Shown here in pieces: positions 2,687 to 64,000 of a stretch of 64,000 nt of DNA (position 1 is its first letter; each line of letters opens with the position of its first letter). The notes beneath the pieces were generated by a model, which did not search any database, had not been told where the DNA came from, and saw only the letters and a list, made by a program, of their open reading frames with translations. Where the stretch lies: positions 124,001-188,000 of the IMG/VR virus record IMGVR_UViG_3300027816_000052. The stretch is one strand, 5' to 3'. Position numbers and translations under genes: made by a program.

Positions 2687-2687
2687 A

Positions 2688-3063: not shown

Positions 3064-3065
3064 GT

Positions 3066-3248: not shown

Positions 3249-3268
3249 TGTATTAAATTTGATTACCG

Positions 3269-3299: not shown

Positions 3300-3311
3300 A
3301 TATTTATAGAT

Positions 3312-4130: not shown

Positions 4131-4216
4131 TATAATATATTTATATAATAGAACTTCTATAGAGAGAATAATTTTTAAAAAACAAAAGTAAATAGAAAAT
4201 TTTTTAAAAGTTATAG

Positions 4217-4224
4217 TATTTATA
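4217..4224 (+). promoter_or_regulatory. Putative late promoter motif TATTTATA upstream of the tail tube gene (representative of at least 13 copies)
   Basis: TATTTAT(N) recurs shortly upstream of starts at 3301, 4217, 4787, 7332, 9567, 21042, 22929, 24750, 28850(-), 28904, 38306(-), 38346, 42186, 63785. Confidence 0.6.
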
Positions 4225-4257
4225 GATAAGAAATAAAAAAATTAAAAATTATAGAAC

Positions 4258-4746: not shown

Positions 4747-4810
4747 AAATTAAGTATATCCTTTACAACCAAAATTAAATTCCATATATTTATATGAAAA
4801 GTATAGATAT

Positions 4811-6388: not shown

Positions 6389-6433
6389 TTAAAAAAAAAT
6401 TATAATTATTTTTATGTTTAAACTATTATAATA

Positions 6434-7183: not shown

Positions 7184-7322
7184 GTATAGAAAATCGTCAC
7201 TTGACGAATATTATTATTTGGCGAAGTATTTGAATTTGGATTATAGTTCTTACTTATCCATGCCAATATTCATTCGACGTTATTTAATTGATAAATTGAT
7301 TGAGGAATATACTAAAAAATAA
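7137..7322 (+). CDS. gp51-like/GT-type chaperone extension, possibly expressed by frameshift from the preceding gene
   Basis: YYYLAKYLNL...LSMPIFIRRYLI pattern; 47-nt overlap with the upstream ORF containing GAG TTT TTT CGT. Confidence 0.6.
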   Translation: MSKLILDRSFFVLSSEYRKSSLDEYYYLAKYLNLDYSSYLSMPIFIRRYLIDKLIEEYTKK

Positions 7323-7354
7323 AATAACTTCTATTTATTATAAAAAGTACCTCA

Positions 7355-9550: not shown

Positions 9551-9588
9551 AATTTTAAAACTCATCTATTTATTGAGAAAGTGATAAT

Positions 9589-31457: not shown

Positions 31458-33908
31458 ATGGGTAAAGATAAAAATTTCGAGTATCTCGGACAAACATTTC
31501 AGCTTCAATTGATTAACCAAATTATCATTGACAAAATATTCGGCTCATCAATTATTGACGTTATGGAAGTCTCTTATTTCGAGAATAAGTATTTTAAAAT
31601 TGTTGTTCAATTTATTAAGGAACATTATGGAAAATATAATGAAATTCCTTCATTTACAACTTTAAAACAAATTATTAAATCTGAGTTAGCACAGGATTTT
31701 CTTGTAAAGGTTGCAATTGATACCTTGGAATCAATAAAAAATGTGTCAACTGACGGTGCTGAGTTTGTACAAGAAAAAGCTTTAAAGTTTTGTAAACAAC
31801 AAGAACTGAAAAAAGTAATGACTAAAGCACAAAAAATTATCGATGGTGGTGAATTTGAAAATTATGACCAAGTTGAATCTTTGGTTAGGAACGCACTTCA
31901 GGTTGGTGAATTGGATAAGGGTCAGATAGATGTTTTTGACGATACTGAGGGCGTTTTAAGTGAGGATTTCAGACATCCGATTGCGATGGGTATTAAGGGT
32001 ATTGATAAGCTCTTAAAGGGTGGTTTAGCGAGGGGTGAAATTGGTGTTATTCTCGCCCCGACAGGGGTGGGCAAAGCCCAAAATGTTAGTGAACCAATTT
32101 TAACACCAACAGGTTGGACCGAAATAGGAAATATTAAACTTGGTGATAAAATAATTGGTTCCGATGGTAATGAACAATATGTGATTGGCGTTTATCCGCA
32201 AGGTCAACGTCCAATTTATAAAATTGAATTTACTGATGATACACATACTTTTTGTGATGCAGAACATTTATGGTATGTTAATACATTAAACATGCGTACA
32301 AGAAAAACACGCATAAAAAATGTGAATAACTATGCTCCGAATTATGGGTATAAAGTGATTAAAACTAGCGATATGTTAGTTGATATAAAAAAACGAGGTA
32401 GATATAATTATAGACTACCTATTGTTAATCCTATTAATTTTAACGAAAAAGATATATTAATTAATCCTTATTTATTGGGTATTTTATTGGGGGATGGTTA
32501 TTTATCTGCAAAAGATAGTATTACTTTAAGTACTAAAGATGATGAAATATTTGATAATATTTCTAATTTAAATCTACACACATCATTTTCTGAATACCAT
32601 AGGGACACTAAAACAATTAAAGTTGTTCGCATTAAAAATGTTATTAAACCTCATTTAACTCATTATGGTTTACTTGGTATGAAATCTGACCAAAAGTTTA
32701 TACCGAAAGATTATATTTTTAATTCAGTAAATAATAGACTTGAATTATTGAGAGGATTAATGGATACTGATGGTTATGCGGATAAAAGAGGTTGTTGTCA
32801 ATTTACAACTGTTTCAGAACAATTAGCAAAAGATGTTAGAGAAATTGTTCTTTCTTTAGGTGGTACAGCTAAAATTAAAACAAAAATACCTAAATATAAG
32901 TATAAAGGTGAGGTAAAGGATGGTAAAATGGCTTATACTGTAACAATATCGTTTGCAAATAATATTGTTCCGTTTAAGTTGTTAAGAAAAGTAAATAGGT
33001 TCGTAAAAAGAAAAAAATATATTGAACAAAAATATATTAAATCAATAAACTATTCTCACGATGAAGAAGCTGTTTGCATAAAAGTATCAAATCCTGATGA
33101 ATTATATGTTACTAGAGATTATGTGTTAACACATAATACAACCGTAATGACAAAAATTGCAAATCACGCATATAATTTGGGTTTCAATGTCCTTCAAATC
33201 TTCTTTGAAGACAATCCAAAAATCATTCAGCGCAAGCATTTTACGATGTGGACCGGAATTAAACCCGATGATTTGACCGCAAATAAGGAAGAAGTTTTGG
33301 AAACGGTTAAAGAGTTGAGAAGTACCTTACCCAATAAATTGATTCTAAAGAAGTTACCTTCAGAATCATTAACCATGTCAAACATTAAAAATCAGGTAAG
33401 AAAAATAATTTCTGAGGGCGTTAAGATTGATTTAATTTGCTTGGATTATATCGATTGTGTATTACCAGAAAAATTCAATGGTGATGAATGGAAGGGTGAG
33501 GGTTCGGTTATCAGAGCATTTGAAGCAATGTGTCATGAATTGGATATTGTTGGATGGACCGCGACCCAAGGTAATCGATCCAGTATTTCAGCAGATGTTG
33601 TAACAACTGACCAAATGGGTGGTAGCATTAAAAAAGCACAAGTTGGTCACGTTATCATATCAATTGCTAAATCTCTTGAACAAAAAGACCAAAAACTTGC
33701 GACAATTGCAATTACAAAATCAAGAATTGGTTCTGATGGTGTGGTGTTTGCAAACTGCAAATTTGACAATGAAATGCTTATTATTGATACAGAGGAATCA
33801 AAAACATTATTAGGTCATGAAAAAGAGGTTGAAGAAATTAATGAAATGAATGCAAAAAAACGATTAGGTGAATTACAATCTAATAAAAAAAGAACAACAA
33901 TAAATTAA
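31458..33908 (+). CDS. dnaB: DnaB-like replicative helicase, intein-interrupted
   Basis: GGLARGEIGVILAPTGVGK|TT Walker A, CLDYIDC, WTATQGNR, IAITKSRIG. Confidence 0.9.
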   Translation: MGKDKNFEYLGQTFQLQLINQIIIDKIFGSSIIDVMEVSYFENKYFKIVVQFIKEHYGKYNEIPSFTTLKQIIKSELAQDFLVKVAIDTLESIKNVSTDGAEFVQEKALKFCKQQELKKVMTKAQKIIDGGEFENYDQVESLVRNALQVGELDKGQIDVFDDTEGVLSEDFRHPIAMGIKGIDKLLKGGLARGEIGVILAPTGVGKAQNVSEPILTPTGWTEIGNIKLGDKIIGSDGNEQYVIGVYPQGQRPIYKIEFTDDTHTFCDAEHLWYVNTLNMRTRKTRIKNVNNYAPNYGYKVIKTSDMLVDIKKRGRYNYRLPIVNPINFNEKDILINPYLLGILLGDGYLSAKDSITLSTKDDEIFDNISNLNLHTSFSEYHRDTKTIKVVRIKNVIKPHLTHYGLLGMKSDQKFIPKDYIFNSVNNRLELLRGLMDTDGYADKRGCCQFTTVSEQLAKDVREIVLSLGGTAKIKTKIPKYKYKGEVKDGKMAYTVTISFANNIVPFKLLRKVNRFVKRKKYIEQKYIKSINYSHDEEAVCIKVSNPDELYVTRDYVLTHNTTVMTKIANHAYNLGFNVLQIFFEDNPKIIQRKHFTMWTGIKPDDLTANKEEVLETVKELRSTLPNKLILKKLPSESLTMSNIKNQVRKIISEGVKIDLICLDYIDCVLPEKFNGDEWKGEGSVIRAFEAMCHELDIVGWTATQGNRSSISADVVTTDQMGGSIKKAQVGHVIISIAKSLEQKDQKLATIAITKSRIGSDGVVFANCKFDNEMLIIDTEESKTLLGHEKEVEEINEMNAKKRLGELQSNKKRTTIN
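32076..33137 (+). mobile_element. Ala-start (class 3-type) intein with LAGLIDADG endonuclease in the helicase Walker A (354 aa)
   Basis: Begins AQNVSEPILTPTGW, ends VLTHN, +1 Thr; EHLW, AVCIKV, LTHN give the WCT triad; LLGILLGDG and LLRGLMDTDG motifs. Confidence 0.9.
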
Positions 33909-38844: not shown

Positions 38845-40683
38845 ATGGCAGAAAGAAGAATAAATTATACCGATAGAGATTTTGTTGCAATAAGACAAGA
38901 TTTAATTAATTATGTTAATACGTATTATCCCGACTTAATTAGCAATTTTAATGATGCTTCGGTATTTTCTGTTTTAATGGATTTAAATGCTGCTGTCACA
39001 GATAACTTACATTTTCATATTGATAGAAGCATACAAGAAACGGTATTACAGTATGCGCAACAAAAATCATCAGTTTTTAATATCGCAAGAACTTACGGAT
39101 TAAAAATACCGGGTCAAAGACCTTCTGTTGCGCTCGTTGATTTTTCAATTACGGTTCCAGTTTTTGGTGATAAAGAAGATGAAAGATATTTGGGAATATT
39201 AAGAAGGGGAAGTCAGGTATCGGGTGCGGGACAAATTTTTGAAACCGTTCACGATATTGATTTTGCGTCACCTTTTAATAATGAAGGGTTCCCAAACAGA
39301 TTAAAAATTCCAAATTTTGATGCAAACAATATTCTTATAAATTATACCATAGTTAAAAGAGATGTTGTTGTTAATGGTATCACAAAGGTGTTCAAAAAAG
39401 TTATAACAAATGCTGATGTTAGACCATTTCTTGACTTATTTTTACCAGAAAAGAATGTTTTGGGTGTTACATCGGTTATTCAAAAAGATGGTGTATCATA
39501 TGCTAATGTTCCTTCAGTACAAGAATTTCTTGGTACTTCAGGAAGATGGTATGAAGTTGATGCTCTTGTTGAAGATAGAATTTTTATCGAAGACCCAACA
39601 AAACCATCAGACCAACCCGGAATTAAGGTTGGAAAATACATAACAACAAATCAACGATTTATAACAGAATTTACCCCTCAAGGATTTTTGAAAATGACAT
39701 TTGGTGGTGGTAATGTAAGTGCTGAAGAGCAACTTAGGGAGTTTACCAGATTAGGAACTCCGCTTAATATACAAAAATATCAAAATAATATGGCGTTAGG
39801 TTCCGCACTAAAACCTAACACAACATTATTTGTTCAATATCGAGTTGGTGGCGGTTTATCAACGAATTTAGGTGTTAACGTAATCACACAAGTTAATACA
39901 GCAAATTTTGCGGTTAACGGTCCATCACAAAGTGTTAATACCTCAGTTATAAATTCATTAAGATGTTCAAACGTTACCGCAGCTATTGGTGGAGCAAATG
40001 CACCAACATTAGAAGAGGTTAGGAATTATGTTTCATTTAATTTTTCCGCACAAAATAGAGCGGTAACAATAAGCGATTATGAAGCATTAATTAGAAAAAT
40101 GCCGGGACAATTTGGCGCACCAGCAAAAGTTGCAATTGTTGAGGAAGATAATAAAATTAAGGTTAAAATATTATCATTTGATTCTTCGGGTAAATTAACA
40201 CAAATAGTTTCAAATACATTAAAAAATAATTTAGCTAATTATTTATCGAACTATAGAATGATAAATGATTATGTTTCAATTGAAACCGCTGAAGTTATTG
40301 ATTTAACTGTTGATGTTTCAGTTGTTTTAGATGCAACACAAAATCAAGGTGCGGTTGTTTCTGATATTATTAATACAATAACAACTTATTTTAATCCTTT
40401 AACAAGACAACTTGGTGAAAATGCTTATATATCCGAAATAAGAAGATTGATTCAATCATTAAATGGCGTTATTACAATAACATCATTGGATTTCTTTAAT
40501 AAGGTAGGCGGACAATATTCATCAGCAGAAACATCTCAACCCTATTTGGATAACAACACCAAACAAATTCAACCGATTGATGATACACTTTTTGCAGAAC
40601 CAAAACAAATTTATCAAATTAGATATCCTCAAAAAGATATTACGGTAAGGGTTAAGAATTTTAAAGGTGTTAGCTTTTCATAA
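38845..40683 (+). CDS. gp6-like baseplate wedge protein (baseplate J family)
   Basis: YTDRDF..IRQDL, FGGG, YRVGGG, QNRAVTISDY. Confidence 0.9.
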   Translation: MAERRINYTDRDFVAIRQDLINYVNTYYPDLISNFNDASVFSVLMDLNAAVTDNLHFHIDRSIQETVLQYAQQKSSVFNIARTYGLKIPGQRPSVALVDFSITVPVFGDKEDERYLGILRRGSQVSGAGQIFETVHDIDFASPFNNEGFPNRLKIPNFDANNILINYTIVKRDVVVNGITKVFKKVITNADVRPFLDLFLPEKNVLGVTSVIQKDGVSYANVPSVQEFLGTSGRWYEVDALVEDRIFIEDPTKPSDQPGIKVGKYITTNQRFITEFTPQGFLKMTFGGGNVSAEEQLREFTRLGTPLNIQKYQNNMALGSALKPNTTLFVQYRVGGGLSTNLGVNVITQVNTANFAVNGPSQSVNTSVINSLRCSNVTAAIGGANAPTLEEVRNYVSFNFSAQNRAVTISDYEALIRKMPGQFGAPAKVAIVEEDNKIKVKILSFDSSGKLTQIVSNTLKNNLANYLSNYRMINDYVSIETAEVIDLTVDVSVVLDATQNQGAVVSDIINTITTYFNPLTRQLGENAYISEIRRLIQSLNGVITITSLDFFNKVGGQYSSAETSQPYLDNNTKQIQPIDDTLFAEPKQIYQIRYPQKDITVRVKNFKGVSFS

Positions 40684-51904: not shown

Positions 51905-54873
51905 TGGCAAAATTTAAATGTCCTCCACAATATGCTAGCGGCTCTCAAACGCCATTTGACAACATAGTTGGCTTCCAATTAGTTGATGGTGGTGGCTTGA
52001 CACAAGCAAATTTTGAGTTTACGACATCAGCAAGTGAAAAAGTAAACAGGACTTTTAGTATTGGTTCGTTTTCCGAACCAATATCTCTTGAAAATCTTGA
52101 ATTAGACTCAACACTAGAGTCCAGAATTTTATTTGCAAAAAATTATGGTGTATTCCCTAATTTAGACTTAAGTGACGTAACTAATTTTACTCTTTATGGT
52201 TCACTATCAAAACGATTAGAAGTTTCTATACAAAAAATAATAAATTATTTTCCTGCGGCAATTGAAGTTTTAAACTTAAATTCCGACTATTCAACAGGGG
52301 TAACTGCTTATAATTCAGCATACAATTCAATTGAAGATGAAACTGAGTTCACAATTAATATTTATCAATTAAGAAATCCATTCTTAATTGATTATTCTGT
52401 TAATGCAACCAGAAATTTAGAAACAAGAGAAATTAAAGTTTCTGGATTAAGAAACCTTAAAACAGAATTTGAGAAATATTCATTATTTTATAACAATAAT
52501 GAATATGAAATCATTGATTTTACTCCATCTGAAACATTAGATTCTGGGACATTAACATTTATTGTTAGAGGTAATCCATTTAGTGGTCTTTCATATATAC
52601 TTGAAGATTTTTACATTAAACCAAATTCTTATTACACCGAACTTTCATTTAATCAAGATTTTGATGAAGTCGAAAAATTTCTCTTAAATAGATTAATTGT
52701 TCCTGAATATACCGCAGTATTTAAAGTACCAAAACAAACTGATGATGGTAAATTTTATATAAATAATGTATCATTAACTTGGCCTAAAAGATTTATATGG
52801 AATTTAGATATTGAATCAACAAAGTTTTCATCATATTTGGAAAATCTATCAGAAATTGGAGCATCATTTGATATTGTTAAAACGAATCTAATTTCTAGAT
52901 TTTTAACAACTGAGGCTATTAAAGAATTTGATACTTCTGACCAAAAAATTGAAAAAGTTTTACAAATTTATGGTAGAAGTTTTGATGAAGTTAAAAAATT
53001 TATTGATGGATTGGCTTATATGAATTCGGTTCATTATAACCCATCTAATGATATTCCATCTCAGTTACTTAAAAATCTTTCGATGACTTTGGGTTGGAAA
53101 ATTAATGTTTCACCAATATCTGAAGACGAATTTTTAAATGCTATATTCTCAACTGGAGGTGAATCTCAATATCAAGGATTTAGCGTAAACAAAACGCCTG
53201 ATGAATTAAACTATCAATTTTATAGAAACTTAATACTTAATTCCGCTTACTTATTTAAGTCAAAAGGAACCAGACGTTCAATTGAATTTTTATTAAGGAT
53301 GATTGGTGCTCCGGATGCTCTTATTGAATTTAATGAGAATATTTACATGGCGGATCAAAGAATTAATATGTTTCAATTTGAGACCAAATTTGCACAAATT
53401 TCTGCTGGGACGTTTACACAAATAAATCCGGAACTTATTCCCGGAAATACATTTAATTTACTTGGTATACAATATACAGCATTTACATCTGTAACATCTT
53501 TTGAGCAAGTAAATGTCTTACTTGAAAACTATCCAGTTGATGAGTTTGGTTTCCCAAAACCACCAGAAGATAATGAATCGTTCTTTTTCCAACAAGGTGC
53601 TGGTTGGTATCAGTCAACACCTCAACATAGAAGTCCTGAGGAAGTTAATTTAACAAATTCAGTTTTCACGGGAAATAATCCATCAATTCAAACGCAATTA
53701 GAACCATTTACTTACGGTCAAAAATACCTTGAAAGATTTAGAAAATTCCCATATATGAGGGAAGGTTTTAAATTACAAAGAGTATTAGATAATAAAAAAT
53801 CTTGGCCCTCAACAGAAGTTGGATTAAGAGAAAATTTTGATGGTAATTATAACGCATATTATTATGCTTATGATGAAAAATTAGTTTTAAATGTTAAAAA
53901 TACTGAAATTTTCTTAAATCCAGCACAAGGATTGGTTTACGATGTTTGGTCATCATCTCAAAAATATAATTATCCAATTCCAGATTCTGGACTAACTTCA
54001 CCATATCCAGTACCCGGAGGTATTGATTGGACAATAATTAATCCACAACCAAAAAGAAGAACATTTTTTGAATTTGCTCAAACATTTTGGACAAATATGA
54101 TTAATGTTCGTAATCGAATGTATATAACGGATGGAAAAACTGGTGGATATCCAACATTAGCATCTGTATTTTGGAAATACATACAAACTAATCAAGCTGT
54201 TTGCATTCCATTTGATGATTTTACGTATCAAAAATTAATTGATTACGTGGAACAAATAGGTGATTATTGGATTCAATTAATTGAACAAATGGTTCCCGCA
54301 ACAACGATATGGGATACGGGTATTAAATATGAAAATTCAATCTTTCATCGACAAAAATTTGTTTATAGAAGACAAAGAGGTTGTCAGATTATTCCAGTCC
54401 CATGTAAACCATGTATTGCACAAGACAATTTATTTACGTATGATTGTAATTATGGATTATATTCTTGTTCCATTTTACCAAGAGTTGGTGGTGGATTACA
54501 AACACTACAAACAACATCATTTAATACGGTTCTTTATCAAACATTAATTTCTTATTTAATAAGTCAGGGACTAACAATAAATGAATGTATTTTAAGTTCA
54601 CTTGTTTCTGAATGGTACGTTGATATTAGAATTGACGGTAATTCTATCGTACAAGAACCATTTTTTACAGGATATGGAATAAATCAAGTTCCCACACAAT
54701 TACAGTGGACAAATGCAATTATTGCAAATCTTGGTGAATTGAATGATAATGGATATTATGGGTATTTAGATGGTAATACTCTATATGTAAGAACTTTAGG
54801 TTGTGTATTTTCTATTTCAAATAATCCACTAGAATTAAATGTGGGAATAAATTTATCGATTAATTGTAATTAA
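51904..54873 (+). CDS. Putative baseplate wedge/virion protein (989 aa)
   Basis: YLFKSKGTRRSIEFLLRMIG resembles the KGT motif of gp7/tail-I-type wedge proteins. Confidence 0.55.
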   Translation: MAKFKCPPQYASGSQTPFDNIVGFQLVDGGGLTQANFEFTTSASEKVNRTFSIGSFSEPISLENLELDSTLESRILFAKNYGVFPNLDLSDVTNFTLYGSLSKRLEVSIQKIINYFPAAIEVLNLNSDYSTGVTAYNSAYNSIEDETEFTINIYQLRNPFLIDYSVNATRNLETREIKVSGLRNLKTEFEKYSLFYNNNEYEIIDFTPSETLDSGTLTFIVRGNPFSGLSYILEDFYIKPNSYYTELSFNQDFDEVEKFLLNRLIVPEYTAVFKVPKQTDDGKFYINNVSLTWPKRFIWNLDIESTKFSSYLENLSEIGASFDIVKTNLISRFLTTEAIKEFDTSDQKIEKVLQIYGRSFDEVKKFIDGLAYMNSVHYNPSNDIPSQLLKNLSMTLGWKINVSPISEDEFLNAIFSTGGESQYQGFSVNKTPDELNYQFYRNLILNSAYLFKSKGTRRSIEFLLRMIGAPDALIEFNENIYMADQRINMFQFETKFAQISAGTFTQINPELIPGNTFNLLGIQYTAFTSVTSFEQVNVLLENYPVDEFGFPKPPEDNESFFFQQGAGWYQSTPQHRSPEEVNLTNSVFTGNNPSIQTQLEPFTYGQKYLERFRKFPYMREGFKLQRVLDNKKSWPSTEVGLRENFDGNYNAYYYAYDEKLVLNVKNTEIFLNPAQGLVYDVWSSSQKYNYPIPDSGLTSPYPVPGGIDWTIINPQPKRRTFFEFAQTFWTNMINVRNRMYITDGKTGGYPTLASVFWKYIQTNQAVCIPFDDFTYQKLIDYVEQIGDYWIQLIEQMVPATTIWDTGIKYENSIFHRQKFVYRRQRGCQIIPVPCKPCIAQDNLFTYDCNYGLYSCSILPRVGGGLQTLQTTSFNTVLYQTLISYLISQGLTINECILSSLVSEWYVDIRIDGNSIVQEPFFTGYGINQVPTQLQWTNAIIANLGELNDNGYYGYLDGNTLYVRTLGCVFSISNNPLELNVGINLSINCN

Positions 54874-57005
54874 TGAATATTTTTGATGTCAATATAATAT
54901 TAACCGGTGATTGTACAAATAGTAATCTTGGTGCTGCGACTTTAACCGCAGTACCTAATGTTAATACCACATCTCCTTTTAGTTATTTGTGGTATGACCC
55001 ATATTTAGGTACCGGACAAACACAAACTGGATTATCCGCTGGAACATATTTTGTGGAGGTAAACGACTCAAGTACACCAAATAATATTAGCTTAGTAAAC
55101 GTTACAATTAGTTCGGGTGCTTGCGCATCAATAATAAATGTAGTAGATACAACTTGTAATCAAAATAATGGTGAAATCACAATATCAGGTAATACAAGTT
55201 CTCCATTTGAAAATGTTTTTTATTTATATAGTGGTACATCTTTAGTTGATAGCTATACAGCAACAAGTGAAAGTCATACATTTATCTCATTATCTCCCGG
55301 AATCTATTATGGGGTTATTGAAGATGCTGGTGGATGTACTGGTGTTACTGAAACATGTATTATTCACGAATCTACTAATTTAACATATGGTGCATTTATT
55401 ATACCCGCAACTAGTTGTGTCGGCACTGGTGGAAAAATAATTATAACAGGGGAAACTGGAACACCACCATTTACTTATCAGTGGAGCGATATTAATGGAC
55501 CTATTTTAAGCGAAACTGGAAGTACAATCAGTGGTTTAACAAGTGGTCTATATACCGTTAATGTGACTTCAGCAGATAACTGCTCTTTGACTACGGCTTA
55601 TAACTTACCTCAAACAGATTCGTTGGGTGCTTTTGTAACTAGTGTAATTTCTCCAAGCTGTTTTTCTTCTGATGGGGAAATAACTATAACAGTAACGGGA
55701 GGTACCGGCCCATTTTTTTATTCCGGTTCTAATGCTACAACAGAAATTACATATTCAACAAATTATGTGTTTACTGGACTTTCTTCAGGACCATTTAGCG
55801 TATCAATAACTGATGTTGGTTTATGCAATACGCAATTAACAACCTCATTAGAAACACCAAATACCTTTGATATTGTTTCTGTAAATGTCGTTAATACAAC
55901 TTGTGGTGCAACCGATGGTCAAATTAGTGTTGTAATAAATGGAGGAACAGCACCATATTTCTATCAAATAGACGGACCAAATGGTACTGAGTCGTTAATA
56001 TCTAATTTTTTAACACAAACTTTCACTAATTTATCAGGTGGCTCATACACTTTAATTATTTCAGCAAGTAGTACAACTTGTGTTTATACACAATCGTTGT
56101 CAATAATATCAACACCCTTATTTAACGTTTCTACCTCAACAACCGGGTCAACTTGCGGACAAAATAATGGCGTTGTTTTAATACAAAAAACAACAGGCGG
56201 CACATCACCATTTTTATATGAAATAAGTGGACCCGTTAATTTAAGTTCATTGTCTGTTGATGATAATTTTACATTTACAAATTTACCCACAGGAAATTAT
56301 GTTGCAAATGTAACTAGCCAAGAAGGTTGCGTAATCAGTTCAAGTTTTTATATACAAGAAGAACCACCATTAAACTTCACATTATTTGGCACAGATTGTG
56401 GTTTAGGTAGTGAAGGAACAATAACTGTAATATTAACATCTGGTGCACCACCGTTTACAATAAATTGGTTCCCAAGCGTTTCTAGCGGTATTTATGCAAC
56501 AGGATTAACTTCTGGTAACTACTCAGTAACTATAACCGATAGTAATGGTTGTACAGATACGCAAGAAATAGAAATTACTTGTAGCGCACTTTATACTGGA
56601 TATAGAACATTCAATATTTGTTCCGATAATATGGAGTTAAGTTATGGTAATAAATTTGGGTTAATTGAAATGTTAAATTATGGTTTTCAGGATATAACAA
56701 CCGGCGACACTACATGTGTTCTTAACAATGCTCAATTTATTGCAAGCGTCACTGCAAATACAATAACAACATCTGGTTCGGTTTATACAAGTTATTCATT
56801 AATTGATGTACCAACAGATGAACAACTTTATGGAACAATAGAAACTTTACTTGAATCTATAAGTGGTATTGGTGATGTTACAATTGATTATACAAATAAC
56901 CAAATAATTATAAATTCCGATTGCACATTAAATAATAATTTAAGTGATATTGGAGTAAAAATTGAACTTATAATTATTTATGATATAACATGTGACGATA
57001 TATAA
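54873..57005 (+). CDS. SprB-repeat-like beta-rich virion surface protein
   Basis: Repeated C...DG.I.V...GGT.PY.Y...F.GL..G.Y.V.V.D..GC units. Confidence 0.7.
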   Translation: MNIFDVNIILTGDCTNSNLGAATLTAVPNVNTTSPFSYLWYDPYLGTGQTQTGLSAGTYFVEVNDSSTPNNISLVNVTISSGACASIINVVDTTCNQNNGEITISGNTSSPFENVFYLYSGTSLVDSYTATSESHTFISLSPGIYYGVIEDAGGCTGVTETCIIHESTNLTYGAFIIPATSCVGTGGKIIITGETGTPPFTYQWSDINGPILSETGSTISGLTSGLYTVNVTSADNCSLTTAYNLPQTDSLGAFVTSVISPSCFSSDGEITITVTGGTGPFFYSGSNATTEITYSTNYVFTGLSSGPFSVSITDVGLCNTQLTTSLETPNTFDIVSVNVVNTTCGATDGQISVVINGGTAPYFYQIDGPNGTESLISNFLTQTFTNLSGGSYTLIISASSTTCVYTQSLSIISTPLFNVSTSTTGSTCGQNNGVVLIQKTTGGTSPFLYEISGPVNLSSLSVDDNFTFTNLPTGNYVANVTSQEGCVISSSFYIQEEPPLNFTLFGTDCGLGSEGTITVILTSGAPPFTINWFPSVSSGIYATGLTSGNYSVTITDSNGCTDTQEIEITCSALYTGYRTFNICSDNMELSYGNKFGLIEMLNYGFQDITTGDTTCVLNNAQFIASVTANTITTSGSVYTSYSLIDVPTDEQLYGTIETLLESISGIGDVTIDYTNNQIIINSDCTLNNNLSDIGVKIELIIIYDITCDDI

Positions 57006-57807: not shown

Positions 57808-60800
57808 ATGTCATTATATAAAAATCCACAAACAGCAACGCAATTAAATGCGCCCGAATCGGTAAATCCAAATCGATTTTATGGAACTAATTTTAGTATA
57901 TTAGGTATTGGTGGTTATGTTGAAGTATATTCTGTAAATGATTTAATTTATACAATACCGGTGGGTTCTTCTGGACCTGTTGAAACTTCAGGAAATACAA
58001 TTCCAATACGTTTAAATATAAACACACCAAATCCTGATGTATTAACTTTAAATTCTGATAATATATCTTCTGGTAGAAGAAGATTAGGAATGTTAGCATA
58101 TGTTTATGAAAATGAAACAACATATCAATATAACATTCCGAATTATACATCATTATTTAGTGCGGCAACAGGAACAACCGCAGTCACAATAACACAATTT
58201 GGTACTACGGTTGATAGCTCAACTCCCGAAGGTCAAGCATTTATTGATGCTTGGACAGCATCAACAATTGAAGGAATAACTCCGGGTGCAACATATGCGA
58301 CAGCAAATTGGAGAATTTTATCACAAAGTGGATCTTCATCATTTGATGTATATGTAACGGGTGGAACATATTCTGCTGGTACTCTAAGTTTTACTAACAA
58401 TTCTGGTGGGACATTTGATATCAGTGGTTTAACATCTACGGATATATTTGTTACGGGATTAACATATACCGGAGCATCATATACTTTAGGTGCAACAAGA
58501 AATGATGGAACTTTATTAACGGTAACATTACCCGGATATGGTGATGTTTTTGTAACTGGTGGCACATATAATCCATTAAATGGTGAAGTAACCTACTTTA
58601 ATAATTCTGGTGGAACATTTGTTGTTAGTGGATTTACAAGTGGATATACTGATTTCTATGTTACTGGTGGAACTTATGATGATAATACAAATACATTAAC
58701 ATTAACTAGAACCGATGCCGGTACTGTACAGGTTACTGGATGGACACAACCAGTAATTATTTCTGGAAGCGGAAGTTGTAGTTCGGTTAGGCGAGACAAT
58801 CTTAATGTTGCGTCCGGCGCTTACTCGACGGTGTATGGTCATTCAAATAACACATGCCAAATAGGTACCGTTATTGCTGGTGGTCAAGGTAATTCTGCTT
58901 TAAATAACGGTTTTAATAACTTTATTGGTGGGGGTATTTTAAATTGGTATGGTTTGAATAATACAACGCAAAGTGCGTATTATAATGTAGGTAATACCGT
59001 GTGTGTTCCCGGAGATTTGACTTCAATATATCAAATTGGTAATTTAGCGTCTTTTTATAATGGGATTGATAATGTGATATATAGTGCGGCAATAACTAAT
59101 AGTACATATAATCCACCTTATACTGAAATACAATTAGATGTTTTTGATACCGGTTCTAATGTTTATTTTCAGGGTTCCATCACTAATTTAAGTTGTTTTA
59201 GTGGAAATTCATTTTATTCTACTATAAGTGGTGGTTATAATAATAAAATATGTGGTTCATTTTCATCTATAATTGGAGGTAGTAACAATTTAATTTGCAA
59301 TAATAATGCATCAATTGGTGGTGGATGTTTAAATATTGCGAGTGGTTTTGGTTCGGTTATAACCGGTGGTTATTTAAATAGAACGACAAATTTTTATTCA
59401 AGCGTTGTTGGAGGATTATCAAATATTGCTAGTGGTAGTGGTTCATTTATCGGTGGAGGTTGTTCTAATAGTGCAACAACAACATATTCGACTATTGTTG
59501 CTGGTGAATGTAATTTATCATCCGGAAACTGTTCATTTATAGGAGGTGGAAGTTCAAATAAAGCATTATCTTCAGGTTCATTTATAGGGGGTGGTTTTAA
59601 CAATAGTGCAACAACGTGTTGTTCAGTTATTGTTGCAGGTGAAAATAATTTATCATCTGGAAACAATTCATTTGTTGGAGGTGGTGGTTCGAATAGTGCA
59701 ACAACGTGTTGTTCAGTTATTGTTGCAGGTGAAAATAATTTATCTTGTGGTCCTTGTTCATTTATCGGTGGAGGTAGTTCAAATTGTGCAACATCTGACG
59801 CTTCTGTGGTTGTTGGAGGTGCATTAAATGTTAATATTGGTACTTATTCATTTATTGGCGGTGGTCGCTGTAATATAATTTCTGGCGCAACAACTCTTTA
59901 TTCATCAGTTGTTGGAGGATTATCAAATATTGTTAGTTGCGATGGTTCATTTATCGGTGGAGGTAGTTCAAATTGTGTAACATCAGCTATTTCTGTAGTT
60001 GTTGGAGGATTATCAAATATTGCTAGTGGTAGTGGTTCATTTATCGGTGGAGGTTGTTCTAATAGTGCGACAACAACTTACGCAACTGTTGTTGGTGGTC
60101 AAAATAATTTATCTTCTAATAATTATTCATTTATTGGTGGCGGATTTTTAAATACCGCAACAGGTTTATGTTCATTAATTGTTGGTGGAAGTTGCAATAG
60201 TGCTACAACAATCTTTTCTACAATTGTTGGTGGTCGTTCTAATTTAATTTCACCAATAGTCGGTCTTCAAAATGCCGAAGGTTCATTTATCGGTGGTGGT
60301 TACAATAATTCAATATATGCCCAAAAATATAGCGTTATTGGCGGAGGTTCAGGGAATACTATAACTGGAAGCGGTAATTGTATTTTATGCGACTCAACAA
60401 TAGCCGGTGGGAGGGAAAATTATATTTATGGATTAGTATCAACAATCGGTGGCGGTAGGGCAAATAGCGCCACAACAAGATCAACAATAACCGGTGGAGC
60501 TAGAAATAGTGCTAGCGGTAACTACTCAACAATAAATGCTGGCGTTAATAATTTTGCAACAGGGTGTGGTTCTATTGCAGCAGGAATTGGTGCTAACACA
60601 ACAGGAGGTACAAGTGACGCACAAGCAATATTAATTAATGCGATAGGGATTCCAAATGGTGATTTCTCTGTGGTATCAGGTGGATTTCAAAATAGATCGC
60701 AAGGAAATTATTCATTTGTTGGTGGAGGACAATTAAATATATCATCTGGTTGTCGCTCAACAATTGCTGGAGGATTTAATAATTCCGAAAGCGGTGTTTA

Positions 60801-61059
60801 TTCATTTATTGGCGGTGGTTGCGGTAATATAATTTCTGGAGCAACCACATCATCTGGTATTTTAGGCGGTGTAAATAATACTATAACAGGTAATACAAAC
60901 ACCTTTATTATTGGGTCAAATATCATACCAAATAGAAATTGTGCTACGTTTGTTAATAATTTATCAATAATTGGATTACCAAACGGACCTATTGGGCTAC
61001 CGTCAGGGTCAATATATTATTGCTCAACCGATTCAAATCGACTATATTACGTACCTTAA
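57808..61059 (+). CDS. Tail fibre/adhesin with FVTGGTY repeats and about 15-aa SFIGGGxxN beta-roll repeats
   Basis: Long Gly/Ser/Cys/Asn-rich repeat region; exact internal DNA duplications. Confidence 0.75.
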   Translation: MSLYKNPQTATQLNAPESVNPNRFYGTNFSILGIGGYVEVYSVNDLIYTIPVGSSGPVETSGNTIPIRLNINTPNPDVLTLNSDNISSGRRRLGMLAYVYENETTYQYNIPNYTSLFSAATGTTAVTITQFGTTVDSSTPEGQAFIDAWTASTIEGITPGATYATANWRILSQSGSSSFDVYVTGGTYSAGTLSFTNNSGGTFDISGLTSTDIFVTGLTYTGASYTLGATRNDGTLLTVTLPGYGDVFVTGGTYNPLNGEVTYFNNSGGTFVVSGFTSGYTDFYVTGGTYDDNTNTLTLTRTDAGTVQVTGWTQPVIISGSGSCSSVRRDNLNVASGAYSTVYGHSNNTCQIGTVIAGGQGNSALNNGFNNFIGGGILNWYGLNNTTQSAYYNVGNTVCVPGDLTSIYQIGNLASFYNGIDNVIYSAAITNSTYNPPYTEIQLDVFDTGSNVYFQGSITNLSCFSGNSFYSTISGGYNNKICGSFSSIIGGSNNLICNNNASIGGGCLNIASGFGSVITGGYLNRTTNFYSSVVGGLSNIASGSGSFIGGGCSNSATTTYSTIVAGECNLSSGNCSFIGGGSSNKALSSGSFIGGGFNNSATTCCSVIVAGENNLSSGNNSFVGGGGSNSATTCCSVIVAGENNLSCGPCSFIGGGSSNCATSDASVVVGGALNVNIGTYSFIGGGRCNIISGATTLYSSVVGGLSNIVSCDGSFIGGGSSNCVTSAISVVVGGLSNIASGSGSFIGGGCSNSATTTYATVVGGQNNLSSNNYSFIGGGFLNTATGLCSLIVGGSCNSATTIFSTIVGGRSNLISPIVGLQNAEGSFIGGGYNNSIYAQKYSVIGGGSGNTITGSGNCILCDSTIAGGRENYIYGLVSTIGGGRANSATTRSTITGGARNSASGNYSTINAGVNNFATGCGSIAAGIGANTTGGTSDAQAILINAIGIPNGDFSVVSGGFQNRSQGNYSFVGGGQLNISSGCRSTIAGGFNNSESGVYSFIGGGCGNIISGATTSSGILGGVNNTITGNTNTFIIGSNIIPNRNCATFVNNLSIIGLPNGPIGLPSGSIYYCSTDSNRLYYVP

Positions 61060-61106
61060 TCTATTTACTTAAATTAATTTATTAAGATTTTTTCTATAAA
61101 AAAATT

Positions 61107-61985
61107 ATGGAAAAATATTGTCTTTTTCACATAGAAGGTGGTCTTGGAAAGAATGTTGCAGCAACAGCAGTTGCAAAATGTATTAAGAATAACTATCAAG
61201 ATAGAAAATTAATTGTTGTTGCGAGTTATCCTGAGGTATTTTTAACATTACCTTTTGTTGATAGAGTTTTTAGAATTGGAATTACGCCATATTTCTATCA
61301 GGATTACATATTAAATAATGATACTTTAATATTTAAACATGAACCATACTTTACAACAGACCATATTTACAAGAGGAAACATCTAATTGAAAATTGGTGT
61401 AATATATATAATTTAACATATAATAATGAAACACCTGAATTAGTTTTTAATTTAAGACATAAACAATTAGCAATTAGAGATTGGAGACGTAATAAACCAA
61501 TTATGATACTTCAGACAAATGGTGGTCCAATAAATGAACAACCATATAATTACTCTTGGACAAGAGATATGCCATTTTCTACATCACAAGCAATTGTAAA
61601 TGCTTTTAAAAATGATTATCATATAATACAGATTTGTAGAAATGAAAATAATGTAATTGAAGGAACTGAACCCTTATTTAAACCCATGACAAATATGGAG
61701 CTTTTTTCGCTATTAATGGCATCAGAAAAAAGAGTTTTAATTGATTCTAGTTTACAACACGCTGCTGCGGCAATGGGTTTACCTTCAGTGGTTCTCTGGG
61801 TCGGGACTAGTCCAACAGTTTTTGGTTATGGACTACATAAAAATATCATATCTAATTTACCCGAAATAAAACTACCAGACAGTTATTTATTCGATTATTC
61901 ATTTAATGGTTCAACACAAGAATGCCCATTTATTGATGATAATATTTTTAATCCTGAAATCGTAATTCAAACAATTTTACAATAA
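61107..61985 (+). CDS. GT-B glycosyltransferase (GT9/heptosyltransferase-like)
   Basis: IEGGLGKNV, LIDSSLQHAAAAMGLPSVVLWVGT. Confidence 0.75.
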   Translation: MEKYCLFHIEGGLGKNVAATAVAKCIKNNYQDRKLIVVASYPEVFLTLPFVDRVFRIGITPYFYQDYILNNDTLIFKHEPYFTTDHIYKRKHLIENWCNIYNLTYNNETPELVFNLRHKQLAIRDWRRNKPIMILQTNGGPINEQPYNYSWTRDMPFSTSQAIVNAFKNDYHIIQICRNENNVIEGTEPLFKPMTNMELFSLLMASEKRVLIDSSLQHAAAAMGLPSVVLWVGTSPTVFGYGLHKNIISNLPEIKLPDSYLFDYSFNGSTQECPFIDDNIFNPEIVIQTILQ

Positions 61986-62806
61986 TGCCAGAACAAATAT
62001 TTTTTCAATCCTCATTACCTAGAGCGGGGTCAACTTTATTACAAAATATAATAGGACAAAATCCAAATTTTTATGTAACACCGACTTCTGGTGTTCTTGA
62101 ATTGGTTTATGCTGCTAGAAATAATTATACAAATTCACCAGAATTTAAAGCACAAGAATATGAATTAATGAAAAGTGGTTTTAATAAATTTTGTCATGAC
62201 GGTATGTTTGGTTTTTTTAATGCAATTACAGATAAAAAATATGTTTTAGATAAAAGTAGAGGGTGGGGAATACATTACAATTTTTTAGATGGATTTTATC
62301 CAAATCCAAAAATAATTTGTATGGTTAGAGATTTACGAGACATATTTTGTTCTCTTGAAAAAAAGTTTAGGGAAAATCAGCATATGGATTCCGGTTTAAT
62401 AGACCACTCAAAAATGCTAGGCACAACAACCGAGAAAAGAGTTGATATTTGGGCAAATAGTCAACCAGTTGGTTTAGCAGTTGAAAGACTATATCAAATT
62501 TTTAGGGAAGGAAATAATCAAAAAATGCTTTTTATAAGATACGAAGATTTGGTAACTAACCCAAGAAGAGAAGTTGAAAGGATTTATAATTATTTTGAAT
62601 TACCAACTTTTTATCACTCTTTTGATAGAATTGATCAAATAACAAAAGAAGATGATTCTGTATATGGAATATATGGCGACCACACAATCAAAACAAAACT
62701 TGAATTACCAAAAAGTAACGCAAAAGAAATCTTAGGTGAGGGTGTTTGTAATTGGATTCAAGACCGTTATAAATGGTATTATGATATTTTTTATAGAAAC
62801 CTTTGA
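61985..62806 (+). CDS. PAPS-dependent sulfotransferase
   Basis: 5'-PSB loop SSLPRAGSTLL, 3'-PB VRDLRDIFCS, IRYEDLVTNP. Confidence 0.85.
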   Translation: MPEQIFFQSSLPRAGSTLLQNIIGQNPNFYVTPTSGVLELVYAARNNYTNSPEFKAQEYELMKSGFNKFCHDGMFGFFNAITDKKYVLDKSRGWGIHYNFLDGFYPNPKIICMVRDLRDIFCSLEKKFRENQHMDSGLIDHSKMLGTTTEKRVDIWANSQPVGLAVERLYQIFREGNNQKMLFIRYEDLVTNPRREVERIYNYFELPTFYHSFDRIDQITKEDDSVYGIYGDHTIKTKLELPKSNAKEILGEGVCNWIQDRYKWYYDIFYRNL

Positions 62807-63783
62807 GTGAATTATTATTTGTATCGGCACAACATGATGTACCTTACTTCCATTGGCAAGCAGAGGTATATATAAATAATTTTATTGAAAAGGGAGTACC
62901 CCCAGAAAATATTCATGTTATTTTTTCTCTTCATAATGGCGCGGACAAACCATCTAAGGGTGCTAGGACGCTAAAATTAAAATATGGTAATGTTCATTTT
63001 TACAAAGATGATAGAGAAAAAACTCATTATATTCCAAGCATAAAACCATTTTTAATTTCAAAGTGGTTAAAAGAAGAACCAAGCAGAGGTAATTTATTTT
63101 TTTTACATGATTCCGATATTCTATTAACCAGAATTCCTAATTTTTCAAAACTTTTAGATGACGATATTATTTATATGTCTGATACTGTTGGATATATAGG
63201 TTATAGTTACTTAAATGAATGTTCTAAAAGATATGAACAAAAACATCCAATATTATCTGAAAATAAATTAATCGATGAAATGTCGGAAGTTATTGGATTA
63301 CATCCTGAAACAATAAGGATAAATCAAAAAAATTCAGGCGGTGCTCAATATGTTTTTAAAAAACAAGAATGGAAATTATGGGATAAAATCCATAAAGATT
63401 CAACTGAATTATATGATAAACTTTTAAGTTTTCATAAAAAATATCCAATTTCTCCCGGTGAAATACAATTTTGGACCGCTGAAATGTGGTCCATTCTATG
63501 GAATATGTGGTATGCGGGGTATAAAACCGAAGTGGTGAATGAATTAAATTTTTCTTGGGCAACCGATGACATTCACAAATATGAAACAAACCCAATTTTT
63601 CATTTAGCTGGAATTACCGAACAACAAAAAAACGAAAGATTTTATAAGGCGGATTTTATTAATAAAAATCCGTTAGACTCATTAAGAAATAATATTGATT
63701 TTTTTGATTATGTTGATAAAAATAATGCAACATATAAATACGTTGAAAATATGAGGTTGCTTGTTAAAAAACAAGGTTACTGA
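62803..63783 (+). CDS. GT-A glycosyltransferase resembling HPAT/serine O-glycosyltransferase families (TTG start)
   Basis: SIKPFLISKWL, DxD motif HDSDILL, WTAEMWS. Confidence 0.6.
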   Translation: MSELLFVSAQHDVPYFHWQAEVYINNFIEKGVPPENIHVIFSLHNGADKPSKGARTLKLKYGNVHFYKDDREKTHYIPSIKPFLISKWLKEEPSRGNLFFLHDSDILLTRIPNFSKLLDDDIIYMSDTVGYIGYSYLNECSKRYEQKHPILSENKLIDEMSEVIGLHPETIRINQKNSGGAQYVFKKQEWKLWDKIHKDSTELYDKLLSFHKKYPISPGEIQFWTAEMWSILWNMWYAGYKTEVVNELNFSWATDDIHKYETNPIFHLAGITEQQKNERFYKADFINKNPLDSLRNNIDFFDYVDKNNATYKYVENMRLLVKKQGY

Positions 63784-63807
63784 TTATTTATGTTTAAAGA
63801 ATAGAAT

Positions 63808-64000
63808 ATGGCTGATTATCAACTTAGAGATTGTGCAAATAATGATTATCTATTCATTTTAAGTGCATATACGTTAACCTCCCTATCAACAGGGTCAACA
63901 TATTTTATTGAATATACCGGAAACACATCGAATGGAGCGCAACCATACTCTGGTTGTTCTACTGTCGTAAATTTTTCAGGCTCCGGATATACCTTTGAGG
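63808..64000 (+). CDS. Partial Ser/Thr-rich putative virion protein; runs off the window end
   Basis: Manual translation MADYQLRDCANNDYLFILSAYTLTSLSTGST..., TATTTATG upstream. Confidence 0.65.
   Translation, partial: MADYQLRDCANNDYLFILSAYTLTSLSTGSTYFIEYTGNTSNGAQPYSGCSTVVNFSGSGYTFE

Follow-up and report, generated by a model that had tools for sequence, protein, structure and literature searches.

What is the function of three back-to-back genes for two putative sugar-adding enzymes and a putative sulfate-adding enzyme in the tail-fibre region of a phage? The genes are located in a 64,000-nucleotide window (the whole stretch of DNA analysed) from a 256-kb, T4-like jumbo phage. A sequence-only reading had proposed that two glycosyltransferases and a PAPS sulfotransferase build a sulfated O-glycan on the fibres. 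Here we examined whether the genes and enzyme identities hold, and which substrates are likely. The features needed are listed below.

38845-40683, + strand: baseplate wedge subunit (phrog_219, E 3.5e-25), which marks the start of the baseplate and fibre module.
54873-57005, + strand: 710-aa fibre or adhesin protein with SprB repeats (Pfam SprB, E 1.7e-17), part of the same structural gene array; the position is kept in relatives.
57808-61059, + strand: fibre-like protein of 1083 aa, candidate substrate of the ORF1-ORF2 pair.
61107-61985, + strand: ORF1, 292 aa, ATG start, predicted GT-B glycosyltransferase with a GT9 (heptosyltransferase) fold.
61985-62806, + strand: ORF2, 273 aa, ATG start, PAPS-type sulfotransferase.
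62803-63783, + strand: ORF3, 326 aa, TTG start, predicted GT-A glycosyltransferase of the unnamed family phrog_4417.
63808-64000, + strand: start of a 616-aa fibre-like protein that runs past the window end to window coordinate 65658 (808-2658 of the genome stretch L001), candidate substrate of ORF3.

The observation was confirmed: all three genes exist, are tightly coupled and lie between fibre genes. The TTG start of ORF3 is supported because homologues align from residue 1-3. The junctions are TAATG (1-nt overlap) and TTGA (4-nt overlap). A 47-nt AT-rich spacer follows the upstream fibre gene and 24 nt precede the next ATG at 63808. A promoter and terminator scan yielded nothing above chance; no terminator-like site lies inside the cluster. 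The upstream fibre-like protein is rich in Gly, Ser, Asn and Thr (24% Ser+Thr) and has a 15-residue (30-residue) repeat of the type S-F-I-G-G-G-x-x-N, with autocorrelation peaks at lags 15, 30 and 45; it had no Pfam or PHROG hit. The protein starting at 63808 carries four poly-Thr/Thr-Pro tracts. The cluster lies inside the baseplate and fibre module of a gp23-type myovirus, and the three-gene arrangement is conserved in relatives at 65-84% protein identity. Identical contigs occur in three freshwater metatranscriptome libraries, one spanning the fibre end, ORF1 and ORF2. This is weak evidence because DNA carry-over is not excluded.

Next we asked whether the enzyme assignments are correct. 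ORF2 scored above the gathering thresholds of Pfam Sulfotransfer_3 (E 2e-19, 71.2 bits against 27) and Sulfotransfer_1 (E 5.6e-14, 52.6 bits against 22), in agreement with the precomputed Pfam assignments of its homologues, and matched phrog_27463 (E 7e-44). The 5'-phosphosulfate-binding loop (P-x-x-G-[ST]-T), P12-R-A-G-S-T17, is nearly invariant; R115, D116 and S123 of the 3'-phosphate-binding motif (R-D-x-x-x-x-x-x-S) are invariant in 23 sequences. The sulfotransferase fold was predicted with a pTM of 0.90, and the clade is mostly viral. The best sequence hits among solved structures were the tyrosylprotein sulfotransferases TPST1 and TPST2, yet only at E 6.5e-5 over two short stretches, as expected for any Sulfotransfer_3 member; the nodulation-factor sugar sulfotransferase NoeE matched about as well (E 1.8e-7, far below its cutoff).

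ORF1 did not reach the Pfam GT9 (Glyco_transf_9) cutoff (16.5 bits against 22, E 0.0056, C-terminal 50 residues only). Nevertheless, its AlphaFold model (pLDDT 83) showed a GT-B two-Rossmann fold closest to GT9 structures. Foldseek (E 6e-10) gave TM 0.65-0.69 to 3tov, 0.62 to WaaF and 0.70 to Campylobacter jejuni WaaF; over the LPS/LOS heptosyltransferases WaaC, WaaF and WaaQ the range was 0.60-0.70. The segment D213-S-S-x-Q-H-A-A-A aligns to the donor-binding segment of WaaC (residues 261-270; D-[ST]-x-x-x-H-x-A-A-A), and structure-atlas neighbours carry PF01075. However, the N-terminal catalytic G-D motif is replaced by E-G-G-L-G-K, and the context is viral fibre genes, not an LPS-core operon. 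Similarity to the bacterial autotransporter heptosyltransferases Aah/TibC (BAHT), which O-glycosylate Ser of repetitive beta-helical adhesins in the cytoplasm, was somewhat lower (TM 0.59-0.65). ORF1 is about 100 residues shorter than TibC and had no hit to the respective model, TIGR04414, at E up to 1. At least 3872 homologue clusters of ORF1 exist.

ORF3 matched phrog_4417, a family always annotated 'hypothetical', over nearly its full length (E 1.8e-66, residues 6-318 against profile positions 3-289 of 293); prophage members score 6.6e-118 and 1.1e-122. It is 34% identical to gp51 of Enterococcus phage phiFL1A (E 7e-56). The sequence-only reading would have failed had the third gene lacked a GT-A fold. 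The model (pLDDT 93.3, pTM 0.91) is a GT-A fold with 172 PDB matches at E<=1e-3, led by GT24 and GT8 catalytic domains. The nearest folds are Arabidopsis peptidyl-Ser alpha-galactosyltransferase SGT1 (GT96; TM 0.66) and the hydroxyproline O-arabinosyltransferases HPAT1-3/RDN (GT95; TM 0.54-0.60), which share the GT-A fold with DxD and use peptide hydroxyls in Ser/Pro-rich, mucin-like sequences. D103-x-D105 and H267 are invariant in 29 sequences down to 31% identity, as is the W224..M228-W229 motif; the motifs KP..W, DxD and W.AEMW named in the sequence-only reading are invariant across the family. Assignment of a metal site thus rests on sequence conservation. At the sequence level ORF3 and 29 family members had no match to Pfam HPAT (PF23452), DUF7164, GT8 or any other Pfam family. 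In the six-frame genome the HPAT model found nothing at E<=10, although the controls were silent as well, and the only DUF7164 hit is a different gene. Some neighbouring atlas clusters carry PF23452. The link to peptide O-glycosyltransferases is therefore structural, at about 15% identity, and ORF3 is a cytoplasmic, soluble enzyme, not a Golgi membrane protein. No prolyl-hydroxylase-type or PhyH dioxygenase was found in the genome, although the PhyH control was silent, which makes that negative weak. Hence, Thr or Ser is a more likely acceptor than Hyp. Other contexts of the family are peptide-related: fusions with GT60 (Skp1 Hyp-GlcNAc transferase family) and protein O-fucosyltransferase domains, neighbours of the LanC-like and HlyD types, and structural neighbours fused to PqqD. 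All three enzyme assignments of the sequence-only reading, i.e. GT9-like GT-B, PAPS sulfotransferase and HPAT/SGT-like GT-A, were right.

What are the substrates? In a tract scan of the whole genome only 6 of 284 ORFs carried poly-Thr/Thr-Pro tracts. Four are the consecutive genes directly downstream of the cluster and one is the tail sheath. In 49 of 58 distinct related jumbo-phage loci a tract protein lies within two genes downstream of the ORF3 homologue. Synteny among related jumbo phages is not independent evidence, however, and Thr/Pro linkers are common in fibre proteins whatever their modification state. Independent lineages were examined as well. Where the ORF3 family occurs as a stand-alone gene in bacterial genomes, mostly in siphovirus prophages of Bacillota, the upstream gene has a poly-Thr tract in 32 of 39 loci, against a background of 34 of 478 other ORFs (p 7e-26). 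The tract is usually the C-terminal tail of the major tail protein. The enzyme gene sits directly after virion proteins that end in poly-Thr tails in Enterococcus, Lactococcus, Lactobacillus and Bacillaceae phages. Among 62 non-duplicate homologous major tail proteins, 17 of 17 with a poly-Thr tail have the enzyme gene next to them and 44 of 45 without a tail lack it; the single exception has a TTTSTTSA tail. On a tree of the protein cores the trait changes 10 times, at least 5 on well-supported branches, and the enzyme follows every time. Named isolates show the same pairing: phiFL1A gp50/gp51, Lactococcus phage 1706 orf13/orf14, and Lactobacillus phage iLp84 capsid and decoration proteins with gp9. 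A complex prediction of ORF3 with the C-terminal poly-Thr peptide of the downstream protein scored 0.02, which is not evidence either way.

These data bear on two other readings. First, glycosylation of hydroxymethyl bases in phage DNA, as in T4, could be considered because the phage is T4-like and phage glycosyltransferases are often DNA-modifying (literature cited in PMC12619734). This is very unlikely: the folds are GT9 and HPAT/GT8-like, not those of the T4 alpha- or beta-glucosyltransferases, the genes lie in the structural and not in the nucleotide-metabolism module, a sulfotransferase has no known DNA role, and the co-variation is with protein tails. Second, the enzymes, at least ORF1 and ORF2, might modify the host envelope (LPS core, O-antigen or capsule) during infection to block superinfection or to stop progeny from sticking to debris, their place among fibre genes reflecting only late timing. 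Besides the nearest structures of ORF1, the GT8, GT25 and HtrL/YibB families in the relatives' islands, typical of LPS cores, argue for this; similar clusters in large cyanophages are usually read as cell-surface modification (PMC12801897), and homologous sulfotransferases occur in Synechococcus phages. On the other hand, the ORF3 family co-varies with poly-Thr tails in phages of Gram-positive bacteria, which have no LPS. The genome itself encodes an Aah/TibC-type protein O-heptosyltransferase domain (positions 3792-6527 of genome stretch L177; 302 bits against a curated TIGR04414 cutoff of 200), and relatives place one directly before the ORF1 homologue and beside repeat fibres. The linkage to homologous fibre genes is tight and repeated, and no lipid-carrier, flippase or polymerase genes were seen in the loci examined. 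Host-LPS modification, already raised in the sequence-only reading, remains a live but minority alternative and is unlikely.

Are the three genes a single pathway? ORF1 and ORF2 form a separate conserved pair. ORF2 follows the ORF1 homologue directly in 47 of 74 viral loci (47-57 of 74 counted as coupled to a glycosyltransferase), and homologues of the repeat fibre lie within 9 kb of the ORF1 homologue in 51 of 74. In relatives the pair is also linked to an APS kinase. In 74 of 74 other viral loci, however, the pair lies away from the ORF3 homologue. Possibly the three genes are two modules that became neighbours only in this sub-lineage, and a single three-step pathway is not implied by conservation. 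ORF2 might then sulfate protein residues of the fibre directly (Tyr, Ser/Thr or a hydroxylated residue), with ORF1 acting separately and without a sulfated glycan. The weak TPST matches would fit, and bacterial operons joining a dioxygenase, a sulfotransferase and a PAPS synthetase with phage tail-collar or collagen-like proteins have been predicted to hydroxylate and then sulfate those proteins directly (Iyer et al. 2010, PMC2938197). The present genome also has a collagen-like protein beside its second glycosylation locus. Yet no 2OG dioxygenase was found in the genome, glycosyltransferases take that place, and the coupling of ORF2 to a glycosyltransferase fits a sugar acceptor. We consider direct protein sulfation unlikely. 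No APS kinase and no second sulfotransferase were found in the 256 kb, which is 85% complete by CheckV; the phage would have to depend on host PAPS.

The sequence-only reading had further suggested that the glycan mimics sulfated polysaccharides which Bacteroidota bind via Sus/SprB systems. We found no evidence for this. According to the sequencing-run records the phage comes from freshwater, not marine, samples, and SprB repeats alone do not establish a Bacteroidota host. A cyanophage identity was considered and rejected; no psbA was found. A nucleotide search of isolated phages returned only an 84-nt match, to a marine single-cell virus. The earlier interpretation is therefore supported in part: O-glycosylation of virion proteins gained strong independent support for ORF3, the single sulfated O-glycan pathway is plausible but unproven, and host mimicry has no support.

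The best explanation at present is that the genes are late, co-transcribed virion-modification enzymes, to which we assign a probability of about 0.55. In this view ORF3 would transfer a sugar from a nucleotide sugar onto Thr (or Ser) hydroxyls in the poly-Thr and Thr-Pro tracts of the four downstream fibre-like proteins and probably of the tail sheath. ORF1 would add a further sugar, either extending that glycan or glycosylating the adjacent Ser-rich repeat fibre, its conserved neighbour. ORF2 would then sulfate a sugar hydroxyl using host PAPS; many relatives carry their own APS kinase beside the pair. The predicted result is a mucin-like, negatively charged glycan coat on fibres. The analysis itself demonstrated the gene structure, the enzyme folds and motifs, the synteny and the co-variation of the ORF3 family with poly-Thr tails. 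For this uncultured phage, attachment of a glycan to virion proteins, the acceptor residues, the sugars, the order of steps, and the placement of sulfate on the glycan rather than on protein or host lipopolysaccharide are inferred from sequence, predicted structure and genetic association only. That ORF3 glycosylates Thr-rich virion proteins is likely; that ORF1 and ORF2 act on virion glycans is tentative and somewhat less probable than not.

This is reminiscent of mycobacteriophages, where phage-encoded glycosyltransferases are reported to decorate the phage's own structural proteins, with glycans at C-terminal extensions of capsid and tail-tube subunits (Freeman et al. 2023, as summarised in PMC12619734). 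This is exactly where poly-Thr tails occur next to ORF3-family genes in phiFL1A, 1706 and iLp84. The systems differ in that the enzyme family here is the unnamed phrog_4417, the hosts are those of Bacillota phages and aquatic jumbo myoviruses, the candidate targets include fibres and internal linkers, and a sulfotransferase and, in relatives, an APS kinase are attached. Literature searches found no paper describing this family or sulfated virions.

Glycosylation of phage particles is so far documented essentially for mycobacteriophages, where it changes how the immune system recognises the virion. The data suggest that the phenomenon is much wider. An unannotated enzyme family, present in at least 77 sequenced isolates and hundreds of metagenomic clusters, is genetically locked to poly-threonine tails on capsid, tail-tube and fibre proteins; several of those isolates are laboratory or therapeutic-type phages of Enterococcus, Staphylococcus and lactic acid bacteria. 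A farther-reading possibility, which we regard as less likely than not, is that particles of a widespread aquatic jumbo-phage lineage carry sulfated, mucin-like O-glycans on fibres and sheath, built entirely by phage enzymes, with some relatives even supplying their own PAPS via a phage APS kinase, and that, separately, phrog_4417 is a general poly-threonine tail O-glycosyltransferase of tailed phages. Many well-known Enterococcus, Lactococcus, Lactobacillus and Staphylococcus phages would then have glycosylated tail tubes or capsids that have gone unnoticed. A glycan coat could affect adsorption, mucus or matrix adherence, protease resistance, aggregation and antibody recognition. Sulfation of a phage particle has, to our knowledge, not been described. 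If true, it would add a strongly anionic surface chemistry to phage biology and explain why abundant aquatic phages carry sulfotransferase and APS-kinase genes, which are usually filed as 'auxiliary metabolic genes'.

The window (bases 124001-188000) belongs to a single viral contig of 256,029 bp with 29.9% G+C, which IMG/VR classes as linear and which CheckV estimates to be 85% complete. The contig encodes a gp23-type major capsid protein, a tail sheath of 1129 aa and a gp6-like baseplate wedge. Therefore, it is a T4-like jumbo myovirus. A search for psbA was negative in this genome. Near-identical sequence occurs in freshwater metagenomes. The features of concern here are, in window coordinates:

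31458-33908, a protein of 816 aa which matches DnaB-like helicase, primase and 'terminase large subunit' PHROGs at once, probably a primase-helicase whose P-loop region attracts mislabelled families
38845-40683, the gp6-like baseplate wedge
57808-61059, a fibre-like protein of 1083 aa
61107-61985, ORF1, 292 aa, predicted GT9-type GT-B glycosyltransferase
61985-62806, ORF2, 273 aa, sulfotransferase by profile score
62803-63783, ORF3, 326 aa, TTG start, predicted GT-A glycosyltransferase of phrog_4417
63808 onward, four fibre-like proteins with Thr-rich tracts (L001:808-12144, L001 being the stretch of this genome which runs on beyond the window end)

The sequence-only reading had claimed three coupled genes for a GT9-like GT-B enzyme, a PAPS sulfotransferase and a GT-A enzyme between Ser/Thr-rich fibre genes. 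This observation held: the three ORFs are real. The junctions are TAATG and TTGA. A spacer of 47 nt separates ORF1 from the upstream fibre gene, and 24 nt separate ORF3 from the next gene. A scan for terminator-like sites found none inside the cluster. Three freshwater metatranscriptome libraries hold contigs 100% identical to the region 59000-64000; one contig of 2535 nt spans the fibre end, ORF1 and most of ORF2. This is compatible with expression as part of the late fibre transcript; however, DNA carry-over is not excluded. Thus, the phage, or its DNA, was present and possibly active in those lake samples. In the DNA run, contigs break repeatedly inside the repeat region of the fibre gene (59313-60139), and one joint links 60139 back to 59313 with 37 foreign letters. 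This points to assembly ambiguity or strain variation in repeat number.

ORF2 is a sulfotransferase by curated thresholds (Sulfotransfer_3, 71 bits against a cutoff of 27). Both PAPS-binding motifs are conserved across 23 homologues. By sequence its closest solved relatives are tyrosylprotein sulfotransferases, but only weakly. Homologues are annotated as sulfotransferase in the Synechococcus phages S-SKS1, S-SCSM1 and S-SRM01. Direct sulfation of protein, either TPST-like or as proposed for tail-collar and collagen-like proteins (PMC2938197), cannot be excluded for ORF2. ORF1 falls below the Pfam GT9 cutoff. Nevertheless, its model (pLDDT 83) is a GT9-type GT-B which matches an uncharacterised GT9 and WaaF/WaaC-type heptosyltransferases at TM 0.60-0.70, and the protein heptosyltransferases TibC and BAHT at 0.59-0.65. 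The donor-site segment aligns to WaaC.

ORF3 has no hit in Pfam or NCBIfam but belongs to phrog_4417, annotated as 'unknown function'. Its model (pLDDT 93.3) is a GT-A fold. In the PDB it resembles the GT24 and GT8 catalytic domains. Among Swiss-Prot models its best matches are Arabidopsis peptidyl-serine alpha-galactosyltransferase (TM 0.66, E 1e-8) and the hydroxyproline O-arabinosyltransferases (TM 0.54-0.60). D103-x-D105, H267, K81-P82, W88 and the W224-T-A-E-M-W229 motif are invariant or nearly so down to 31% identity. Thus, every structural call of the sequence-only reading was correct; the lack of a GT-A fold in the third gene, which had been set beforehand as a ground for rejection, was not borne out. 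Elsewhere in this genome an ORF of 274 aa has a weak match to Pfam DUF7164 (L096, own genome 84230-84565, minus strand; E 9.8e-5, below cutoff). This family appears among the Atlas neighbours of ORF3. The ORF may be a further GT-A-like gene.

Next, the genomic context was examined. The upstream protein of 1083 aa consists of 17% Gly, 14% Ser, 11% Asn and 11% Thr and has a clear periodicity of 15 and 30 residues, which suggests a fibre of the beta-roll or beta-helix type. We scanned all 284 ORFs of the genome for poly-Thr/Thr-Pro tracts, defined as a window of 10 residues with at least 8 T/P/S and at least 4 T. Six ORFs qualified. Four are the fibre-like proteins immediately downstream of ORF3, including a SprB-repeat protein. 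One is the tail sheath and one is a marginal hit in a protein of 1580 aa. An RCC1 beta-propeller protein among the downstream proteins has only a short Pro-Thr linker which did not pass the filter. Two tandem paralogues of 779 and 783 aa (L001:7450-9789 and L001:9793-12144; window coordinates 70450-75144, beyond the window end) share most of their sequence, and at the same position one carries a poly-Thr linker and the other a Pro/Thr-alternating linker. The tail sheath (L178:7371-10760, own genome 119371-122760) is unusually long. Its sheath domains occupy only the last ~280 residues and the protein carries a poly-Thr/Ser tract. Possibly, the sheath surface is a glycosylation target as well.

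About 22-27 kb before the window the genome has a second modification locus (stretch L177 of this genome). A protein of 911 aa (L177:3792-6527, own genome 99792-102527) joins an N-terminal SAM methyltransferase to a C-terminal Aah/TibC-type autotransporter O-heptosyltransferase domain (TIGR04414, E 5.3e-90, 302 bits against a cutoff of 200), i.e. a protein-Ser heptosyltransferase in a phage. At L177:1060-3792, 6493-7740 and 8663-9931 (own genome 97-106 kb) the same locus holds a GT4 + FkbM methyltransferase fusion (910 aa), a GT60-family PF11397 enzyme (E 2e-76) and a collagen-like protein (PF01391, E 1e-41). Together these form a second glycosylation and methylation locus. A phage carrying what is, by sequence, a bona fide protein O-heptosyltransferase is evidently in the business of glycosylating proteins.

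The key evidence came from the ORF3 family elsewhere. The family is large, with 823 clusters at 50% identity (E<=1e-3), and 77 isolated phages carry it, always as 'hypothetical protein'. In bacterial genomes it occurs as a stand-alone gene of about 300-360 aa, mostly in siphovirus prophages of Bacillota, as fused proteins of 500-590 aa in Chitinophaga, Pedobacter and Mucilaginibacter, and as proteins of about 1000 aa in Acidimicrobiia, fused to F5/8 and GT60 domains. The fused proteins of soil Bacteroidota have no poly-Thr neighbours. In one case, Chitinophaga polysaccharea (L026:7998-9722, with neighbours at 2293-3579 and 9707-10873), the gene lies beside HlyD-type and LanC-like genes, and structural neighbours in the Atlas include PqqD (RiPP recognition element) fusions. 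This hints at glycosylated ribosomal peptides. In a Gracilibacillus prophage (L073:7995-9029) the family member carries a C-terminal extension which matches an Arc-like repressor PHROG (residues 289-344, E 1.4e-13).

In the prophages the gene sits between the major tail protein and the tape-measure region. The gene immediately upstream of a stand-alone member carries a poly-Thr tract in 32 of 39 loci, compared with 34 of 478 other ORFs and 0 of 42 downstream genes (Fisher p 7e-26). Usually, the tract is the extreme C-terminus of the major tail protein. To control for relatedness we collected 69 viral loci encoding homologues of that tail protein. Among non-duplicates, 17 of 17 proteins with a poly-Thr tail are followed by the enzyme gene and 44 of 45 without the tail are not (p 2e-14). 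The one exception ends in TTTSTTSA. On a maximum-likelihood tree of the protein cores, with tails removed, the state changes 10 times, at least 5 of these forced by well-supported branches. In every independent contrast the enzyme gene goes with the tail. With only 5 strongly supported contrasts the sign test by itself gives p 0.06.

The pairing is seen in named isolates. In Enterococcus phage phiFL1A the tail protein gp50 ends in a Thr/Ser run of 23 residues and gp51 is the enzyme. In Lactococcus phage 1706 orf13 ends in ten Thr and is paired with orf14. In Lactobacillus phage iLp84 the capsid protein ends in seven Thr, a protein of 126 aa is mostly poly-Thr and gp9 is the enzyme. ORF3 of the window is 34% identical to phiFL1A gp51 over 319 residues with all motifs kept. 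In the jumbo-phage lineage the orientation is reversed but the association holds: in 49 of 58 distinct loci a tract-bearing protein lies within two genes downstream. These loci are syntenic relatives and count as one line of evidence. The pattern parallels that reported for mycobacteriophages, where glycans sit on C-termini of capsid and tail-tube subunits (as summarised in PMC12619734).

ORF1 and ORF2 homologues are even more numerous, with at least 3872 and 2986 clusters, respectively, at 90% identity. We examined 74 viral loci holding an ORF1 homologue. The sulfotransferase follows directly in 47 and lies within 1.8 kb in 57. An APS kinase with an NMNAT-like adenylyltransferase is present in 25, homologues of the 1083-aa fibre in 51, and an Aah/TibC-like gene (E 2.5e-35) in 28, directly upstream of the ORF1 homologue. 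An ORF3 homologue is present in none. In L007:11717-12636, from a relative, and in 25 other viral loci the APS kinase is followed by an NMNAT-like nucleotidyltransferase of 154 aa (PF01467) and a DUF2061 protein, right after the sulfotransferase. The nucleotidyltransferase could be an unusual sulfate adenylyltransferase or an ADP-sugar synthase. One relative has two ORF1-ORF2 pairs flanking two fibre genes. Another lacks the sulfotransferase and has ORF1 directly followed by ORF3. The full arrangement of the window, i.e. fibre, ORF1, ORF2, ORF3, then tract and RCC1 proteins, is kept in three relatives at 65-84% identity. Therefore, the cluster is best seen as two conserved modules that became adjacent in this sub-lineage, on the one hand fibre, GT9-like enzyme and sulfotransferase, on the other ORF3 and the Thr-tract proteins.

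We propose that ORF3, a metal-dependent GT-A by prediction, transfers a sugar to Thr/Ser hydroxyls of the poly-Thr/Thr-Pro tracts in the cytoplasm, before or during assembly. ORF1 is GT9-like, and GT9 enzymes typically add a sugar to a sugar. In this view it would either extend this or another O-glycan or glycosylate the neighbouring repeat fibre, and ORF2 would sulfate the product with host PAPS. None of these steps is shown biochemically; all functional statements rest on sequence, predicted structure and gene context. Comparative genomics lends strong support to the link from the ORF3 family to poly-Thr proteins and moderate support, from synteny only, to that from ORF1 and ORF2 to the fibre. 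A dependence of ORF2 on PAPS is supported by its motifs and by the APS kinase in relatives. The acceptor atoms, the sugars, the order of steps and the biological role, be it a charge or hydration coat, protease protection, adhesion or masking, are inferred.

Modification of the host envelope, which the sequence-only reading had listed as an alternative, fits the LPS-type folds and families. However, it does not explain the co-variation with virion-protein tails in Gram-positive phages, the protein heptosyltransferase and the fibre linkage. DNA glycosylation is very unlikely. Taken together, the interpretation put forward in the sequence-only reading, a pathway building a sulfated O-glycan on fibres, was supported in part. 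For its further idea that such a glycan mimics the sulfated polysaccharides bound by Sus/SprB systems there is no evidence for or against, in a phage of freshwater habitat and unknown host.

Phage-encoded glycosylation of virions as such is known. Full-text searches, which did not extend to subscription literature, found no description of this family or of sulfated virions. What appears to be new is the enzyme family, which is unnamed in Pfam, PHROGs and GenBank, its breadth across phage groups, its rule-like association with poly-Thr tails and the attached sulfation machinery.
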